From the NCBI GenBank assembly GCA_010909165.1, contig MU008202.1, positions 400,336-464,335 on the forward strand: a stretch of 64,000 bases of DNA. The letters are read 5' to 3'. Position numbers and translations under genes: made by a program. This document shows, one piece after another, positions 41,634 through 48,834 of this stretch. The notes below the pieces were generated by a model, which saw only the letters and a list, made by a program, of their open reading frames with translations, searched no databases and was not told the DNA's origin. The stretch's first letter is position 1, and each line of letters opens with the position of its first letter. This DNA is from Anthoceros angustus. Taxonomy: Eukaryota; Plantae; Anthocerotophyta.

Positions 41634-42260
41634 ATGGATCGAGCTGGCCAGGCCAACGTGATGGAATGTGGAGCACCTGCCGGTGCTTGGGAGAGTTCGG
41701 AACCTGGCGGCGACGGACAGAGTCTCTCCGAGCCCGGCTGTGCATCCCCGCATTTGCAGGCCATGAGGGACGATCAGCTGGAGGTGCTGCGGCGGCAGAT
41801 TTCAGTTTACACCATTATCACTCGACAGCTAGCGGAAATGCTCATGGCCGACCAGAGGCAGGTTCCTTACACCTCACACCATCTGTCCTTCGACTCCGCG
41901 CTCAGCAGCGCTCCGGTTAGGGTGAGCGCCAGGCAGCGGTGGACTCCGAGTATCAAGCAACTTCAGATCCTGGAGCGGTTATATGTGAATGGCGATGGTG
42001 CGAAAATGGACAAGCATAGGATCAAGGAAATCACCGCCGAACTGAGCGAGCACGGAGCCATCCAAGATACCAACGTCTACAACTGGTTTCAGAACCGGAA
42101 AGCCAGAGCCAAGAGAAAGCAAGCCCGAGCACAGAATCCGTCTGAATCGGACGGGGTCCCGGGGTTAGATCCTGAGCATTTGAGAGATGGTGGCTCCAAG
42201 AAGCCGCGGATGGATGTAGAGAGTAGTGTCCTTATTAGTGTCGACGCGGTTGCCGGTTGA
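41634..42260 (+). CDS. WUSCHEL-related homeobox protein, WOX13 (ancient) clade, intronless and divergent
   Basis: WOX13 motif MRDDQLEVLRRQISVYTIITRQLAEM and homeodomain SARQRWTP..QLQILERLY...IKEITAELSEHGAIQDTNVYNWFQNRKARAKRKQ. Single 208-aa ORF. Confidence 0.92.
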   Translation: MDRAGQANVMECGAPAGAWESSEPGGDGQSLSEPGCASPHLQAMRDDQLEVLRRQISVYTIITRQLAEMLMADQRQVPYTSHHLSFDSALSSAPVRVSARQRWTPSIKQLQILERLYVNGDGAKMDKHRIKEITAELSEHGAIQDTNVYNWFQNRKARAKRKQARAQNPSESDGVPGLDPEHLRDGGSKKPRMDVESSVLISVDAVAG

Positions 42261-43084
42261 TAAGCCTGCGCAGGCTGCGTGTCCTCCCGTAGCCAGTTTT
42301 TCGCAGTTGTGTAATCCTCAATTTTAGTCTTCATCAAACGCCCGCCATTTTCCTTCTTTCCGCGTTTGATGAGCAGTGTTGGAATGCCGTCATGCTCCGA
42401 TGTGTTTGTTTCACGGTGCAGCTCCTCTTCGCAGATTCGGAGGAGAGACAAGTCCCTTCCAGTCTTTGTGTTTCACAAAGTAGGACCCGAAGAGGAGGCG
42501 TGCGGTGTCTGGATGTGTGAGGAGGCTGGGGTCTGTTGAAGACAGTTTCAGCTTATGTGTCGGCACGTGCCACCATCTGCTTGCTATTGCAGCCAGGAGC
42601 AGGAACGGCCGGGCAACCGGGCGTCGTGATGAAACGGTGAAACACGGCGATTTGTTATCCTGCCATCAGACAACAGTAATGGGTACAGGATTAGGCTTTC
42701 GCACGATAAGCCGCGGGCCGGGCCCAACCTGGCCAGAATAGACAAAGGTCCCTGGGGGTGGAAGGACCGGACTGCGCGCAGCTGTGGAGGCAGCCGCTGA
42801 CAGACTCAGCTTTCCAGCTACGGGACTCGCTCTGCACTTGGGCTCTCTCTCTCCCGCCATGACCCAGGTGCTCTCTCCCGCTCTTTGAATCGCTGCGTTT
42901 GCCCCTGATCTTAGCCTGCTCCCTTGCCGGTTTCCTGTTGCAGGTTTGGAGTTTCGGAGCCGCAGGTGAGTCGTGCAGCTGGACTCTTTGAGTACTTCAG
43001 CTGCCAGATTGTGTGGCAGACTGCGCACCTCGCATACCAATCTGTGTCTGCATCCCCGGATTTCCTGAAAACGCTGATTTGCAG

Positions 43085-43581
43085 GGTTGCAGGTGCGGGC
43101 CAGCTGGGGACAAGCTTGTTCTGCGCGGTTTGAGGTTTCACGGATTTCATGGAGTCTATGTGGAAGAAAGGAAACTGGGCCAGAAGTTTGTGGTGGATGT
43201 AGATGCCTGGCTTGATCTGAGCAAGGCCGGTGAGACAGATTCTCTGGCTCATTCTGTCAGCTATGCGGAGCTGTATAGGTATTTCTTCATTCCTCTTCCT
43301 GTTTTTAGCCTTCTCGTCCCTCTCCTTTGCGAGTCCACGATGTCTTTTCCAACTGCTTTGGCAACTGCAGGCTTATCAAGGCAATCGTGGAAGGCCCGCC
43401 CTTCTCATTACTTGAGAGAGTGGCAAGCAGCATTGCCTCAGAGATTTTTGTAAAGTATCCGACGATCACTGATGTGCGTGTGAAGATCGGCAAGCCGCAT
43501 GTTGCAGTTGAAGGTGCGGTTGACTACTTGGGGGTTGAGATCTTGAGGACTCGACCTGGCGTTGCAGGTATAGCAGGCTAG
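43085..43581 (+). CDS. FOLB: Dihydroneopterin aldolase (folate synthesis); exons ~43085-43278 and 43371-43581; start codon and 5' exon(s) unresolved
   Basis: GDKLVLRGLRFHGFHGVYVEERKLGQKFVVDVDAWLDL...SVSY, LLERVA, VRVKIGKPHVAVEGAVDYLGVEILR. 92-bp GT-AG intron in frame. Confidence 0.9.
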
Positions 43582-43648
43582 CCTTCTTCCACCCTCTGAC
43601 TGCCCTGCCTGGCAGTGATAGGAAGGTATTGAAGGCAGGAAAGCACAA

Positions 43649-44059
43649 ATGGCCTTGTCCTTGAGAAAGCAGCTGCAATTGCTTGCAACCTACTTTCTTC
43701 TCACAGCCATTGAGGTGCTGTGTGTGGAGGGCACATGGCCTTTCAAAAACGAAAGGTGCATCTACACAAGCAAGGGGCAATGTGAAGCAGCTGCCGGTGG
43801 TAGGGTGTGTGCATGGTGTGACCGGCCAAAGGGTTGCTACCCCCTCAGTCTTGCTGGTGAGCTGGTGGACTTCTGTGCCATGGCCCCTCTTCGACGTCCA
43901 ACTGAGGCACTAGACTGTGAAGACATAGCATCTAGGGACAAGTGCAAGTCCTTTGATCGCTGTAAATGGTGCACAAGTCTTGTGGTTCATGATGCATGTT
44001 TCAGTGTGATAGAGGCTAGGCGGCTTCCTGTCCAGGTCTTCGACTGCAAATCACCATGA
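43649..44059 (+). CDS. Small secreted cysteine-rich protein with two 6-Cys (CxWC, PSI-like) modules; function unknown
   Basis: 136-aa ATG-initiated ORF with a hydrophobic N-terminus and two C-x7/8-C-xn-CxWC-xn-C-xn-C units. The end (ACFSVIEARRLPVQVFDC) resembles an uncharacterised plant family, from memory. Confidence 0.75.
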   Translation: MALSLRKQLQLLATYFLLTAIEVLCVEGTWPFKNERCIYTSKGQCEAAAGGRVCAWCDRPKGCYPLSLAGELVDFCAMAPLRRPTEALDCEDIASRDKCKSFDRCKWCTSLVVHDACFSVIEARRLPVQVFDCKSP

Positions 44060-44843
44060 ATTAGCTTTCTTATTGTCACGGGTTTTCATGATACAGCTCA
44101 GGGACTAGTCTAAATGGCAGCACTACATTGCACGGGTCCTCACTTTTGCAGAGGAGTCGTCTTTGATACATGTACAATACACATATACGGTCGTAATTGA
44201 TCCTTGATGTCCATTACCACGCAGGCAAGTACGCACTGTTTACAGTCACTGTACTGGGGTTGGAACTTCGAACCTCGTTCCACCTTCCGACCAGAGCAAG
44301 CTGTATCCTGAAAGTCGGGCGGTTTTCAGGTGCGGACCTTGGAAAGCCTGAATGGTTCAGGTTGTGGAATCCAAACTCGGCGTCGAGCACGTGCATTTCT
44401 AAGCTATCCTGCACTTCCAGTCATTCTGAAACCCAGCACAGCGCTATCGCATCGCATGCTGGTGGTTACATGAAGAGATTGATGTGCGGGTTTGGTGTCC
44501 GCGGCTTTGCTGATTTAGCTGCGAGCTTCAGAGGCAGGACTATGCGACGAAGGGGATGAATTTGACAGGGAGTCTGCGCATCCGCAGGTTTTGGCGCATT
44601 CTTACGATTTCAGGTCTGGCTGGCGCCAGTTTGAGGTGCGAATCGCAGATGGGAAATGTTTGGATGGCAGGAGGCCAAGATTCAAGGGGGAGCAACGAGT
44701 CCTAGCCCCGCAACAGGTTTTCTCTTAGACTTAGCAGACTGCGGTTTACGGGAGAGGTGAGGAGTGGAAGAAGCCGACGGAGAGGAGATCCCGAGGTCAT
44801 CAAGGACTCAAGGTTGGGAATTTGGAGGTGCAGATGGTGGAAC

Positions 44844-46144
44844 ATGGGAAGTGAGAGTGCGGCCGAGGAGCGGCCTAGACCTAAGAAGGGAAAAGCTGCC
44901 ATACTAAGCATCCAAGTGAAGCAGGAGGAGCGTTTGGTGAACAGAGTGTATAACCTGTACATCTATGTGCTAAGGCTTCCCATGCCCATTTTCTTCCTTT
45001 GCCTGCTGAGCACTCCTCTACTGCTCAGTCTTTTCTTTACCTGCCTCTACCTTTTAGACGCAGACGGGTTGCATGTCATACATGATGACGACTGGAAGAG
45101 CAGCACCTTCTTTGACTGGATGGATCACGCGGCGGGGGAGTTCCTGTTCAAGATTTTCATGTTCAGCCTCTCGCTGTCGACAACCTTCAATGGGACAAGA
45201 GTGGAAGCTCGGTCTCCTTACTCCCTCCTCGTGGCCAATATCAACACACTGACGGCCCAGCTTATATTTGTCTTCCTTAGTGGAGCAGGTAAGTTGGACT
45301 GAGTTCCTTTCAAGAAGACATAACCGTGGTCGCCGATGGGGGTGCCAGATTTTTTGCTGAACCGCTGCTGTCTGCAGTGTTCCACAGGCTCTCACAACCA
45401 GCACAGCCTGTGGTATGGTCAAATGTTGCGTTGATCGGGGATGACAACAGTGCAGAAGCCTTTGCCATGAAAAGTCCTCCGACGACAAAACACAGGTAAC
45501 ATGGCATGCTGTTTTCCAGACGCAGTGTTGCTGGATGTAATGACGGACACAGATCACACGTGGAGCGGCTCTCTCATTCTCGGTGCTTTATCTGCAGGGC
45601 ATTTCTTACGAGATTGAACATAACAGGCTCCCAATCGTTGGTTTTGGTTGATGCCAAATTCAGCCTGGTATTCAGGCGGCTGGTAAAAACTCCTGGGACC
45701 CAATCCCCGTTTCTCAGTACGTTTGACCTCCCCCTTGTTCGCTCAGAAGAGGCCTATCTCAAGTATGCGTTCCTCATTCGGCATGTCATTGATGAGAAGA
45801 GTCCTCTATACGGTTTTTCTGATTACCAGGTATTTCTTCTGAGACGCCCATCCATTGTCATGTGAGCATGTGAAGCTATGCTTATCTGCATTGCATTCAG
45901 CAGTCTCTGAACCACTGCTTTTGTGCAGAGTTTGTTAGATGCAGATGCCTCCTTCACCGTCACTGTCTCGGCAACTGAACGGTCATCCATGCAGCCGATT
46001 TTCAGTGAACGCCTTTACTGTATCTACGACAAAGAGGTCCTATGGGATCGGGAGTTTGAGGATCAGTGGGTTCTGAACGAGGCCGGCAATAAGATCATGG
46101 ATCACAGGATGTTAAGCAAGTTGAAGAAGAAGAAAGTTTCGTAA
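44844..46144 (+). CDS. Inward-rectifier (Kir/KirBac-fold) channel-like protein, 336 aa; exons 44844-45288, 45378-45495, 45598-45829, 45929-46144
   Basis: Slide helix/M1 NLYIYVLRLPMPIFFL...FTCLY, pore helix FMFS, M2 ending SGAVFHRLSQP, WSNVALI, DLPLVR, HVIDEKSPLYG, WDREFED. Spliced CDS is 1011 nt and in frame. Confidence 0.85.
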
Positions 46145-46775
46145 CCAAGTAGTAGGGTAGTTGTAAACTGATCAACGGCCAGCTAATTTATACACTCGTT
46201 CCCCTCCTCCGAGTTCATCTCATGATGCCTCTGCGGGGTGGAACAAGGGATGACCTACAGGCATGGTTCCACACGAACTCGACAACTGGTTCTACTGTCT
46301 CTCGTGTTCCAACGTGCCTGAAAATTTCTCCTTGTAGGAAACCCTCGAGTATTTGCCAGCAGGGGGCAAACCTAGCACGCAGAATCTTTCTAAGTACTGG
46401 TAGACTGCAGTCTAGCTGTTCGAGGATGAGAACGTACTGTGCCTGCACGTTCCTGAACAGAACGCGCTCTAGTTTAAACCCTGGGTCAGTTGAGGTGTCC
46501 ATGTAACTGCATTTTCGATGCCGTTTAGCTCTTGCAAAGACGACGAAACACGGCTCCGGAGCTTCGTTGGACGCGCGTGTGAGAGGCTTGTGAGTCGGTG
46601 GTCAAGTCATCGTGGGGACTTTTACACATGGCTCAATTTTTTCCTGCAGATGTTTAGCGGGCTCATCAGGGAGTGGACGTGCTCGCCAGCAACCTTGAGC
46701 TGGTGCTTTTCATCGAATTCCAATTGTGGAGCTTGCTTGCCTTGAGAAGTTGAGATTGCTTGTCCACTACAAGCC

Positions 46776-47495
46776 ATGGCCATGGCTCGGGCGTCAGCTG
46801 GTGCCAGTACACTCGCGGGCTGCCCCTGTTCGAGTGGTCTTCACGATCGCACCCATGTGCCGTCATTCTGTATATCTAGAGTTTGCGTCCAAGGGCCCGT
46901 GGGATGGAAAAGGGGGCAGGTTCACGCGTTGATTGCACAGCCATCTGACAGCACGTCAGACAACGTTGGGGATTTTGTGAAGCGCATGGAGCAAGCCTGG
47001 CTGATCTCCAAGGTATGTTTGGACGGGGGTTGTGCAAGCCCTATGTACGGGTTTTGTTAGATTTGGGGACGTGCATTTGCCCTGAGGACGTCCTTGTGGT
47101 GTCTCCTAATTTGGCAACATACCCTGGGTCCCATTGCAGCAACCGAGGCCAGTGCAGTGTGTCTCATGTGAAGCGAGCGGACAAGCTGAATGTGCCTGGT
47201 GCAAGGGAACCGGATTTTTCACGCTTGGTGACAACATGTTGTGTGAAGTGCCTTCTCGTAATACGAGCTGTCGTGTTTGTTTCGGTCAGGTGAGATCTGG
47301 TGTTCATCTCGTGACTCCTGGGAATGGCTGCCTTTGTTCGGACTTCGGTTCTGTGACACGCTGTGTTGATACCGTCCTTTTGTTTGCGATGGATGGCAGG
47401 GTACCCTGCCGTGTGATGATTGCAAAGGAACTGGCTATCGAGCAAGATGGTTGGGTGATCCGTCCAGAAAACCTTACTCCGAAAACAGACCCTGA
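46776..47495 (+). CDS. Plastid DnaJ-like (CxxCxGxG) zinc-finger protein; exons 46776-47012, 47140-47289, 47400-47495
   Basis: DFVKRMEQAWLISKQPRPVQCVSCEASGQAECAWCKGTGFFTLGDNMLCEVPSRNTSCRVCFGQGTLPCDDCKGTGYRARWL; transit-peptide-like N-terminus. Confidence 0.88.
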
Positions 47496-48834
47496 ATTGC
47501 TGATTTTCGTCACCATCTTATGGGTTATCAAGCGCAAGACCTTTTCCTCCTCTCAAGTTTTCTTCTGCTTTCGGCTGTTTGCCGAAGCGACTCGGGAAGT
47601 GGCATGCAACATCAGACAGACCTGGCAGGCCCTGGGTGTTTTGCAGGGGATTTACTCAACCAGCCGAAACCGGCTTCGATCTTTTGTTGTTGTATATAGG
47701 CAGAAAAAGAACAGCTACCACGAACCCTTGTGGTTTGCAGCTATTTGATTCTTTCATGAGACGTGTTTGCAAAAGCCTCCCAGGTAGGAGGTAGGCTCCC
47801 ATTCCTCCCCTATGCTGTATTTGTGTTTTATGCCTCAGGAAACGAAGGGGTATCCTAAGCTTATTTGACCTGGCTTGGCTTTTTTGTTTTTTGGGTGTCA
47901 GGACCAAGATTTTGTTTGTCTTTGCTGGCCTGCGTGACGAAATTGACAAGATTTTCTTGCATGTCTCCTCTCTCATCACTTCTCTCTCTCCTTGGCCAAA
48001 GCGAGCTCTCGTCCTCTCATTTCCATGCCCCTTTTTTTCTCTTCCACCATCGTTATCTTAGCCTTGGGATAACGATAGCAGAACCCTTCCACCATTGAAA
48101 CAAGCTTTCAAGCAAGGGTCGGCTGAAGCGATGGTTGCCATCATCATAACCCTTGCTTGAAAGCCTTCCCAAAGGACTGTCCCTGGGTACGTGCCAGAGT
48201 GGAGGTCATGGGTCTTGTGTGTGTGCCGGAGATGTACAAAAGGCGGACACTGAAGATGTCTGCCTAACTGTCTTCTCAGTGTCCTTATGGTAGCTGTAGT
48301 GCGTGCCAGTGGTGCTTACCCTTCTGGGTAGTTTTGAAAGTGTAGTCCTCGTGCCCCTGGAGGTGTTTTTAAGCCAGCAGCTGTGCATCCCCCAGCAGTC
48401 TATTGCTTGCCTTCCAGCACCTCAGCGCCACCTTCGGAAGCCCTTCTCTCTTTGGAGCACTTGTTTTTTCAGGTAGTGTAGAGCAGGTCATAAGATTATG
48501 TAGCCTCTAGAAGTTTTGCCTTTCACCCTCTTGCATTTGGAAATGCTTTCGATGGCTGGCCCGACTCAAGTTTCCCTCGACGGCGTCTGATGAGTGCGGA
48601 TGTGTGAGCATCCCAAGTTCAGGGGAGGGTCGCCTGTGCTCCCTGCAGATCTTGGCAACTTGTTTGCCAAGGTCGAGAGCTCCAAGACAGCGTCCCCTGA
48701 CTTGGGATGCTCAGGCGTCCTCTGTCATCATTTTGATACTCTGCAGGAATGAACTAGACAGACTCTTGGCATCAGCCATCGGCTTCCGTTCGACAAGCAA
48801 CCGCACCATGACTCTTGTGTGCACTTTTTAGATA

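Follow-up and report, generated by a model that had tools for sequence, protein, structure and literature searches.

The window analysed here, the whole 64,000-nucleotide stretch of Anthoceros angustus DNA, carries on its forward strand, at positions 44844-46144, a gene of four exons with an intact frame that encodes a protein of 336 amino acids, as read from the sequence and its open reading frames. An in-frame TAG at 44703-44705 lies upstream of the ATG at 44844, which is thus the earliest possible start. Exon 1 (44844..45288, on the forward strand like all features below) comprises codons 1-148 and the first base of codon 149, and reaches from the N-terminus through the slide helix, M1, turret, pore helix and filter loop into M2, most of which it encodes; exon 2 (45378..45495) completes M2 and continues through the RLSQP linker into the cytoplasmic domain. 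Exon 3 (45598..45829) encodes the core of this beta-rich domain, with RHVIDEKSPLYG as part of it, and exon 4 (45929..46144) supplies its end, with an ERSSMQPIF motif, and the stop codon TAA at 46142-46144. Exons and split codons together give the full coding length (148+1+38+1+77+71 = 336 amino acids), and the product has neither long N- or C-terminal extensions nor an obvious transit peptide.

The three introns, at 45289..45377 (intron 1; 89 nt, GT45289..AG45377, phase 1), 45496..45597 (intron 2; 102 nt, GT45496..AG45597) and 45830..45928 (intron 3; 99 nt, GT45830..AG45928, phase 0), are absent from the contigs of two public runs, X2 and X12, which omit exactly 89, 102 and 99 bases with GT..AG ends at the predicted positions. 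Run X2 is from the same organism and shows no differences, and run X12 is from a relative that is about 96% identical. Over exon 1, the RNA contigs are collinear with the window from 44700 to 45284/88. The DNA run X1 retains the introns of the gene, and intron 1 is likewise present in the DNA run X3. The intact four-exon, 336-residue gene proposed in the first-pass annotation is thus borne out by the reading and by the exact intron removal; the gene is real, transcribed and correctly spliced.

Homology to Kir and KirBac channels

The closest relative of the gene product, a protein designated P0034, is 83% identical to it and also carries TFNGT at the filter position. The four exons are collinear with P0034, with identities of 86.8% for exon 1 (residues 8-152), 79% for exon 2 (154-182), 72.7% for exon 3 (196-272) and 88.2% for exon 4 (273-340), and the fold and complex predictions were made on this relative as a stand-in for the gene's own joined protein. 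The AlphaFold model of P0034 is a complete Kir fold (slide helix, M1, pore helix and P-loop, M2, and beta-rich cytoplasmic domain), with a pLDDT of 89.8 and a pTM of 0.79. Its top Foldseek matches were all KirBac or Kir structures, led by KirBac3.1 (E 5.5e-23, TM 0.64-0.81 over about 315 columns) and followed by Kir6.2, Kir4.1 and GIRK2.

Sequence homology to characterised Kir and KirBac proteins extends over both domains. P0015, a near-full-length relative, matched KirBac1.1 (1p7b) with an E value of 2.8e-9, and the family profile (A3) matched KirBac1.1 from M1 to the C-terminus (7swj, E 8.5e-17; 1p7b, E 2.6e-16) as well as KirBac3.1 (E ~5e-15); identity with KirBac is only about 16-18%. Against this profile, solved KirBac proteins scored about 1e-16 and animal Kir channels about 1e-8. 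Together with the P0034 model, these alignments agree with the two-transmembrane plus cytoplasmic-domain Kir architecture that had been claimed from the letters. The homology is detectable only through full-length relatives and the profile: a phmmer search with exon 1 alone against PDB sequences returned nothing at E <= 10. In language-model features (ESM Atlas), exon 1 scored 0.93 to IRK transmembrane clusters, and its ten best matches all belonged to this same family.

The proposed check against the two Pfam profiles gave a divided result, in which IRK_C (PF17655) was found in most relatives and weakly in exon 3, and the IRK transmembrane domain (PF01007; gathering 22.7 bits) had no match in exon 1. 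Exon 3 alone reached 14.3 bits (E 0.033) against an IRK_C gathering threshold of 22.5, in an exon-by-exon scan that lowers scores; P0034 and P0015 reached 18.7 and 25.6 bits, respectively. In a family set of 42 proteins, including four canonical KirBac-like outgroup proteins, IRK_C was matched at E <= 0.01 by 35 members (best E 1e-30) and PF01007 by only five. The relatives scored 12.6-12.8 bits against PF01007 (E ~0.1), below its gathering threshold, and PF01007 or related Pfam ion-channel domains are present in the four outgroup proteins. Sub-threshold matches to DUF4869 for exon 4 (E 0.052) and to BCHF for two relatives (E 0.013-0.047) were rejected as chance overlaps with the TM region or the CTD.

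When four copies of the P0034 pore domain (residues 28-172) were modelled together, the ipSAE was 0.38 vs 0.00 for the best of three controls, with at least 64% contact agreement between runs and a partner pLDDT of at least 58, a score that may stem from solved Kir tetramers which the model has learned. In the calibration of the tool, the mark was reached by 21 of 30 proteins whose solved structures are pairs of one chain and by none of 23 solved as single chains; as this calibration is based on two copies, it is rough for four. The predicted contacts are formed by the pore helix, the loop and M2, and the prediction supports a homotetramer without demonstrating assembly.

The pore and the filter position

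The M1 outer helix lies at 44982..45053 (approximately residues 47-70), as placed from helix 51-74 of the P0034 model via the exon-wise alignment, with a possible shift of one residue. The pore helix at 45138..45182 (approximately residues 99-113, EFLFKIFMFSLSLST; helix 103-117 in the model) aligns with that of KirBac1.1. The M2 inner helix at 45216..45394 (approximately residues 125-154; helix 129-158 in the model) is split by intron 1 and contains a conserved lower Gly, the bundle-crossing Phe (GAVF) and an Arg, which align with G143, F146 and R148 of KirBac1.1.

The HMMER alignments of P0015 and of the family profile with KirBac are ungapped from the pore helix to the end of M2, and exon 1 is ungapped over the same segment against P0015 and the profile members, so that TFNGT falls on the KirBac sequence TVGYG. 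The filter-position loop at 45183..45197 (ACC TTC AAT GGG ACA) places T114-F115-N116-G117-T118 on T110-V111-G112-Y113-G114 of KirBac1.1; where the K+ selectivity signature T-x-G-[Y/F]-G would stand, the gene has T-F-N-G-T. In addition, E106, E130 and G134 of KirBac1.1 correspond to Ser, Asn and Ala in the gene product. The ungapped alignment, the position of TFNGT and the changes at the pore-helix Q/E, the M2 Glu and the hinge Gly, all of which had been noted in the first-pass annotation, were reproduced in this way. No canonical GYG was seen in the reads, and every run covering the site encodes Asn: it is retained in X1, X2 and X12, and in X3 through the synonymous change AAT>AAC.

An ancient streptophyte family

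Relatives of the gene were found in Chlorokybus, Klebsormidium, zygnematophytes, liverworts, mosses, lycophytes, ferns and gymnosperms, and the 71 family matches included no angiosperm protein. Judging from these matches, the family is present in each major streptophyte lineage searched, angiosperms excepted. The phylogeny with algal and bryophyte homologues, which the first-pass annotation had proposed, places the family in three clades, each with streptophyte algae, and within the clades the mosses, liverworts, ferns and gymnosperms form taxon-coherent groups. One of the three (SH-aLRT 97 and 96), distinct in the tree since before land plants, consists of short proteins of about 340-390 amino acids and includes P0034 as well as Klebsormidium, Mesotaenium and moss proteins. 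This short clade is marked by the loop LSLS/CTTFGG and the M2 motif ANxNTLxAQLxFVFLSGAVFxRLSQP, from which the gene departs only in having N for the first G; by its sequence, the gene is a short-clade member of an ancient streptophyte branch within the Kir/KirBac superfamily (TC 1.A.2). In moss ORF fragments the reading continues as ...FLSGAG..., a sign of an intron where the gene has intron 1, and the intron position is conserved in the family.

The loop is almost invariant across the family, as S-T-T-F-G-G-[S/A/T], except in the third clade, where STGL[E/Q]P with a deletion is found and the loop of the wider family is thus not uniform. GYG or GFG occurs in none of the 71 members, and all of them lack both the Tyr/Phe aromatic and the final Gly of T-x-G-[YF]-G. 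The filter-opening Thr and the next residue are conserved (T117 is invariant, and T118 is found in 61 of the 66 sequences having a residue there). The first filter Gly is present in 66 of the 71 members and is replaced by N, S or A in a few lineages; the second is A in Klebsormidium. The claim of a lineage-specific replacement of TIGYG by TFNGT therefore does not hold: the STTFGG loop is family-wide, and the lineage specificity is confined to the Gly-to-Asn change. TFNGT itself is conserved in P0034, and its Asn in all runs; the wider family has TFGG. Among the 71 members, M2 and the filter loop are the least variable parts, with mean entropies of 0.55 and 0.79 bits vs 1.39 for the cytoplasmic domain. 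N136, N138 and Q143 of M2 (P0034 numbering) are invariant or nearly so, and a Glu after the loop is conserved in the short clade only.

No description of the family was found in the literature on Kir and KirBac in bryophytes, lycophytes and streptophyte algae; a paper on EVE/DUF3339 (PMC7060721), in which no mention of Kir was found, is one that we take to be unrelated to it.

Selection on the gene and its origin

Between the gene and P0034, pN is 0.109 and pS 0.734, giving a pN/pS of about 0.15 with synonymous sites near saturation; the differences listed in two congeners comprise 18 synonymous and 8 non-synonymous changes. Four of six motif codons differ between the gene and P0034, all synonymously, and the TFNGT residues are identical. 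Measured in this way, the gene is maintained by selection, and the Gly-to-Asn change at the first filter Gly, the only change specific to this lineage, is retained through synonymous changes in relatives.

A decaying gene with a neutrally drifting filter is hardly conceivable on this evidence. The variation of the first Gly in a few lineages and of the second in Klebsormidium would fit such drift, but the frame is intact, the transcript is spliced, the pN/pS is about 0.15, TFNGT is identical in P0034 despite four synonymous codon differences, and the Asn is kept through AAT>AAC in X3. The combination of a drifting filter and lack of expression, which had been considered at the outset, is contradicted by the same observations. 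Very improbable too, if slightly less so, is a recent transfer from bacteria, or a contaminating bacterial sequence in the assembly; horizontal acquisition had been suggested as possible from the letters. A bacterial source would agree with the better scores of solved KirBac than of animal Kir and with the nearest non-family matches, which are short KirBac-like metagenome proteins. However, the gene is interrupted by three spliceosomal introns, all spliced out in RNA, one at a position conserved in the family; its neighbours are plant genes (WOX homeobox, DHNA); and it has orthologues in algae, every group of bryophytes, lycophytes, ferns and gymnosperms, in three clades with algae and in taxon-coherent groups. 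Furthermore, a pattern scan with the family's two most conserved peptides, which covers close relatives only, found no relative in bacterial and archaeal genomes of 185,579 species. In these sequence comparisons, nothing points to a recent horizontal transfer; an ancient bacterial origin predating the streptophyte ancestor is a separate claim and is possible.

Putative function

The gene product is probably a tetrameric Kir-fold channel with altered permeation, and one that is probably not selective for K+; we hold this reading with some reserve. The first-pass suggestion of a non-selective channel, a channel for another ion or a regulatory subunit is likewise a plausible one. Four subunits would surround a central pore, as in KirBac, and gating would occur at the M2 bundle crossing under the control of the cytoplasmic domain. 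The loop would provide at most inner sites, formed by the Thr hydroxyl and two or three carbonyls. Since the Tyr and the last Gly are missing family-wide, and the first Gly also in this gene, a four-site K+ filter does not appear possible, and passage of cations with little discrimination between K+ and Na+ would thus be expected, as in NaK, CNG, HCN and GIRK2 first-Gly mutants. Among L-residues, Asn adopts the left-handed backbone conformation most readily, and it could replace the first Gly without refolding of the loop. The pores of bacterial NaK (TVGDG), CNG and HCN channels combine a K+-channel scaffold with the loss of outer filter sites and show little K+/Na+ discrimination, but these are different families with other loop sequences and no Kir cytoplasmic domain, so that the likeness is one of analogy through the shared pore fold only. 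The nearest studied case of a Kir pore in which the first filter Gly is replaced is GIRK2 G154S, which is reported to have lost its selectivity in molecular-dynamics simulation (PMC9001731).

The loop is so divergent that the channel may also be non-conducting, or selective for something else. A protein that does not conduct alone, being instead a regulatory or dominant-modifier subunit with paralogous Kir-fold proteins, or a membrane scaffold or sensor, seems rather unlikely. Kir families are often heteromeric, as in Kir4.1/5.1, entries of which are among the family-profile matches, and conservation is highest in the pore helix and M2, which form the interface; but at 0.79 bits the loop is conserved to the same degree as these interfaces, as would suit a role in the pore, the short clade separated before land plants arose, and a pore-domain homotetramer is predicted for P0034. 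Retained K+ selectivity, with a TFGG or TFNG loop that gives enough carbonyl sites, perhaps in a shifted register, is unlikely: the conserved filter-opening Thr and next residue, the first Gly in 66 of 71 members and the Kir scaffold with its gate residues speak for it, but the aromatic and the last Gly are absent throughout the family, the first Gly is also gone here, and Ser at the first Gly of GIRK2 is reported to abolish selectivity (PMC9001731). We consider it quite unlikely that the channel conducts Ca2+, protons, ammonium or anions instead of alkali cations, given that the loop has no evident conserved acidic ring of the Ca2+-channel type and that the Glu after the loop is conserved in the short clade only; the near-invariant polar residues of M2 (N136, N138 and Q143) would nevertheless suit such a species. 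To our knowledge, the family loop also resembles that of no characterised P-loop channel, a further point in favour of a different ion.

Beyond the preferred reading of a channel with little selectivity for K+, we tentatively suggest, at somewhat less than even confidence, that the family is a distinct new Kir-fold channel class of non-flowering streptophytes. This class would be defined by STTFGG and an undescribed selectivity (for example, non-selective cation or Ca2+-permeable), and would have a pre-land-plant origin, three clades, a loss in angiosperms and a first filter Gly that can be replaced by Asn under purifying selection.

Relation to known channels and significance

KirBac1.1 and KirBac3.1 (1p7b, 7swj, 1xl4, 7n9l) are the best matches in both sequence (E 8.5e-17, profile) and fold (E 5.5e-23, TM up to 0.81), and share with the gene product its length (about 300-340 amino acids) and whole architecture. 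In M2 they share with the family the lower Gly and the bundle-crossing Phe; also common to both are the R..P that follows M2 and the motif VIDExSPL(Y/F)G. They differ in the filter (TVGYG vs TFGG[SAT] in the family and TFNGT here) and in the three pore positions given above, and the gene is eukaryotic and intron-bearing, with a pore domain that Pfam IRK misses. Animal Kir channels (Kir2, Kir3/GIRK, Kir4, Kir6) are tetramers of the same fold (TM 0.55-0.65 to the P0034 model), with far weaker sequence similarity than KirBac (E ~1e-8, family profile). In the alignment with KirBac1.1, a non-acidic Phe stands here at the M2 position of the 'rectification controller' (D172 of Kir2.1), and the RLSQP segment presumably stands where Kir2.2 has its basic PIP2-binding cluster after M2.

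In surveys of plant K+ transport, the channels listed are Shaker and TPK/KCO, with BK/SLO-type channels in early lineages. A survey of Physcomitrella and Selaginella from 2012 makes no mention of Kir (PMC3410407). The family described here is old, strongly conserved and apparently unstudied, ranging from green algae to conifers with none found in flowering plants: a true Kir-fold family with a divergent pore loop has been retained from streptophyte algae to gymnosperms and is expressed in bryophytes. If it conducts, algae, bryophytes, ferns and gymnosperms would possess an unrecognised channel class in their electrical and ionic toolkit. The family also forms a natural experiment on the Kir scaffold without a GYG filter. 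Because the genes are short and clonable from tractable models (Anthoceros, Physcomitrium, Marchantia), the question is directly testable. The Arabidopsis protein KCO3 has been called Kir-like for its one pore domain between two TM helices (PMC3410407, PMC8619664), but it is a truncated TPK2 duplicate that lacks IRK_C and the Kir fold and keeps a GYG-type filter (PMC3410407), and it is unrelated to the streptophyte family, in which the Kir fold is a true one.

Identity of the Kir-fold gene

The gene at 44844-46144 (+) was searched exon by exon (44844-45287, 45380-45493, 45599-45829 and 45929-46141), natural full-length relatives representing the whole protein. Exon 1 alone matched neither a Pfam domain nor a solved structure, and exon 3 alone reached 14.3 bits (E 0.033) against IRK_C, the Pfam C-terminal domain of inward-rectifier channels. 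Language-model features placed exon 1 in IRK transmembrane clusters (score 0.93, 203 features in common), all ten best matches belonging to one family. The exon-1 ORF, used in a word search, returned 24 relatives at 55-66% identity, among them proteins of Ceratodon and entries that JGI names 'inward rectifier potassium channel'. The near-full-length family member P0015 passed IRK_C (25.6 bits) and matched KirBac1.1 (1p7b) from the pore helix to the C-terminus with E 2.8e-9; a 15-member family profile, over a span from M1 to the C-terminus, reached E 8.5e-17 for KirBac1.1, ~5e-15 for KirBac3.1 and ~1e-8 for animal Kir. The closest relative, P0034 (342 aa, 83% identical), derives from L001, a 1816-nt contig with an unbroken reading frame, on which window exons 1-4 are collinear at 87, 79, 73 and 88% identity. 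Its AlphaFold model (pLDDT 89.8, pTM 0.79) gave Foldseek top matches that were all KirBac3.1, KirBac1.1, Kir6.2, Kir4.1 and GIRK2 (best E 5.5e-23; TM 0.64-0.81 over ~315 columns). The Kir architecture proposed in the first-pass annotation is thus borne out through relatives; at the level of Pfam, this holds for IRK_C in P0015 and not for exon 1.

We rate the gene as a member of the Kir superfamily with a new and conserved pore loop. UniProt and JGI pipelines label family members 'Inward rectifier potassium channel C-terminal domain-containing protein', and our search of the literature on Kir/KirBac in streptophytes found no paper describing the family. The family, whose function is putative, is of real interest to specialists in plant ion transport and channel structure.

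The altered filter loop

HMMER alignments of P0015 and the family profile to KirBac1.1 run without a gap from pore helix through M2, and T110-V111-G112-Y113-G114 of KirBac1.1 aligns with T-F-G-G-[A/T] of the relatives. Window exon 1 aligns to these relatives equally without gaps over this stretch, which places TFNGT (residues 114-118, 45183-45197) at the filter position, as first proposed. The P0034 model, with a pore helix up to residue 117 followed by a loop at 118-123, agrees with this register. The other pore changes noted initially also hold against KirBac1.1 (E106 to Ser, E130 to Asn and the upper hinge G134 to Ala); conserved positions are the lower Gly (G143), the bundle-crossing Phe (F146), R148 and P152.

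The initial reading of TFNGT as a replacement of TIGYG was correct in that the K+ signature is absent, but the non-GYG loop is family-wide and only the Asn at the first Gly is lineage-specific. None of 71 family members carries GYG or GFG. Nearly all have LSLSTTFGG[S/A/T], the first Gly being replaced by N in the window lineage, S in Diphasiastrum and A in one transcriptome; TTFGA occurs in Klebsormidium and TSYGG in Marchantia, and the third clade has STGL[E/Q]P. Among the 71 members of at least 300 aa, M2 (mean entropy 0.55 bits) and the filter loop (0.79) are the most conserved regions, compared with 1.39 bits for the cytoplasmic domain and 1.89 for the turret; since this set was chosen by its M2 motif, positions 146-154 are biased and the loop is not.

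P0034 also has TFNGT, with four of the six motif codons synonymously different from those of the window. Comparison of 318 aligned codons gives pN 0.109 and pS 0.734 (pN/pS ~0.15, with synonymous sites near saturation), and DNA run X3 carries a synonymous AAT>AAC change at the Asn codon. A partial list of differences in X3 and the RNA run X12 comprises 18 synonymous changes and 8 non-synonymous ones, the latter mostly conservative. Assembly error or drift as the source of the Asn is ruled out by the P0034 codons, the pN/pS ratio and the X3 change. Judged from these sequences, the Asn is fixed and selected in the window lineage, and it is derived, as short-clade algal and moss members have Gly.

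In the Marchantia long-clade proteins P0093 (M. paleacea) and P0094 (M. polymorpha Mp_1g10960), LITSYGGS stands in place of the LSTTFGGS of almost all others, and N replaces a near-invariant M2 Gln. This loop, a second lineage-specific remodelling, sits in a tractable model plant.

Possible function of the pore

We think that the window protein is a pore, because it retains the scaffold and the gate residues and has a strongly constrained loop. For the P0034 pore domain (residues 28-172), a four-copy assembly is predicted, with ipSAE 0.38 (best of three controls, 0.00), contact agreement of at least 64% between runs and partner pLDDT of at least 58. The mark for this score, calibrated on two copies and not four, was reached by 21 of 30 solved one-chain pairs and 0 of 23 solved single chains, and the four-copy pass could stem from the predictor's memory. 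The predicted contacts, like those of K+ channel tetramers, lie in the pore helix, loop and M2.

One alternative is a K+-selective channel despite the altered loop. Its scaffold is that of Kir channels; however, the signature Tyr and last Gly are absent throughout the family and the first Gly is absent in the window gene, making a four-site K+ filter unlikely. In GIRK2, mutation of the first filter Gly is reported to abolish selectivity (PMC9001731). The protein might alternatively be a non-conducting modifier subunit of paralogous Kir-fold proteins, a role to be weighed against the pore reading and its predicted four-copy assembly, or might conduct another substrate. On the pore reading, which we favour over these alternatives, weakly selective cation permeation would be expected by analogy with the weakly selective pores of NaK, CNG and HCN and with the GIRK2 first-Gly mutant.

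Distribution and origin of the family

Two further word searches found the family in streptophyte algae (Chlorokybus, Klebsormidium, Mesotaenium, Closterium, Spirogloea), liverworts (Marchantia, Riccia, Calypogeia), mosses (Physcomitrium, Ceratodon, Sphagnum), lycophytes (Selaginella, Diphasiastrum), ferns (Ceratopteris, Adiantum) and gymnosperms (Ginkgo, Cryptomeria, Taxus). None of the 71 matches at E <= 1e-5 was from an angiosperm, although the named sources were mostly angiosperm proteomes; the evidence that angiosperms lack the family is good, though short of conclusive.

Four canonical KirBac-like metagenome proteins, whose filters fit [T/S]-[I/V]-G-Y-G (TIGYG, SIGYG, TVGYG), served as the root of a quick maximum-likelihood tree (LG+C20+F+G4; 44 rows, 379 columns). 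The short clade (SH-aLRT 97 and 96) unites Klebsormidium, Mesotaenium, P0034 and mosses, and the long clade (94) spans Chlorokybus, Closterium and every land-plant group as far as gymnosperms, with mosses, liverworts, ferns and gymnosperms grouped as expected. The window gene, with its Asn variant, is a short-clade member. The STGL clade has support of 96; Closterium is represented among STGL-type proteins, next to which Spirogloea is unresolved. The algae in the short and long clades, and Closterium among the STGL-type proteins, indicate duplications older than land plants. P0046 (Closterium sp. NIES-65), with an internally repeated cytoplasmic-domain stretch, and P0049 (Spirogloea), with a long insertion, were excluded from profile and tree; both features are probably gene-model or assembly faults.

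ORF fragments of relatives from genomic contigs (P0001, P0002, P0004, P0014 and P0020, several bearing the JGI name 'inward rectifier potassium channel') all end in ...FVFLSGAG before unrelated residues, and moss fragments among the relatives read ...FLSGAG.... This run-on indicates an intron at the phase-1 place of window intron 1, which is thus old and conserved. Family signature peptides were absent from all bacterial and archaeal genomes scanned (185,579 species). The horizontal acquisition first considered is therefore rejected as a recent event, given the pre-land-plant clades, the taxon-coherent groups, the conserved intron and the absence of the family's signature peptides from the prokaryotes scanned. 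An older transfer from bacteria, predating the streptophyte ancestor, is possible, because KirBac scores better than animal Kir.

Long-clade members (among P0055-P0094) measure 500-880 aa and, unlike the short clade, carry long extensions at both the N- and the C-terminus. The N-terminus of one member, P0042, is an apolipoprotein-like repeat, and the fusion of Adiantum P0104 to retrotransposon domains is likely to be a mis-annotation.

Gene structure, transcription and neighbours

Re-reading of 44400-46600 returned the four exons and 336-aa product of the first-pass annotation. The exons lie at 44844-45288, 45378-45495, 45598-45829 and 45929-46144 (+), the last ending in TAA. The three introns (89, 102 and 99 nt) are all GT..AG, and an in-frame TAG lies at 44703-44705, the first in-frame ATG downstream of it being at 44844. 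Spliced RNA contigs from X2 (the window's organism, 0 differences) and X12 (a relative, ~96% identical) skip exactly the three predicted introns, which are retained in DNA runs X1 (the window's organism) and X3 (a third organism, ~93%). At least two species thus express the gene as a spliced transcript.

Plant genes flank it upstream: a WOX-type (WUSCHEL-related) homeobox ORF at 41634-42260 (+; signature NVYNWFQNRKARAKRKQ), a dihydroneopterin aldolase (43013-43453) and a Cys-rich secreted protein (43649-44059). The homeobox ORF, a plant-specific transcription factor, confirms the plant nuclear context. Downstream lies a Zn-finger ORF (47134-47748). The X2 contig (5062 nt) covers ~43200-48500, running ~1.5 kb past 44700 on the upstream side and ~2.2 kb past 46300 on the downstream side, so either transcripts of the gene and its neighbours overlap or the assembler joined them. 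Overlapping the main start codon at 44844 in another frame is a seven-codon upstream ORF (44834-44854; ATG GTG GAA CAT GGG AAG TGA), which may act as a small element of translational control or be a chance occurrence.
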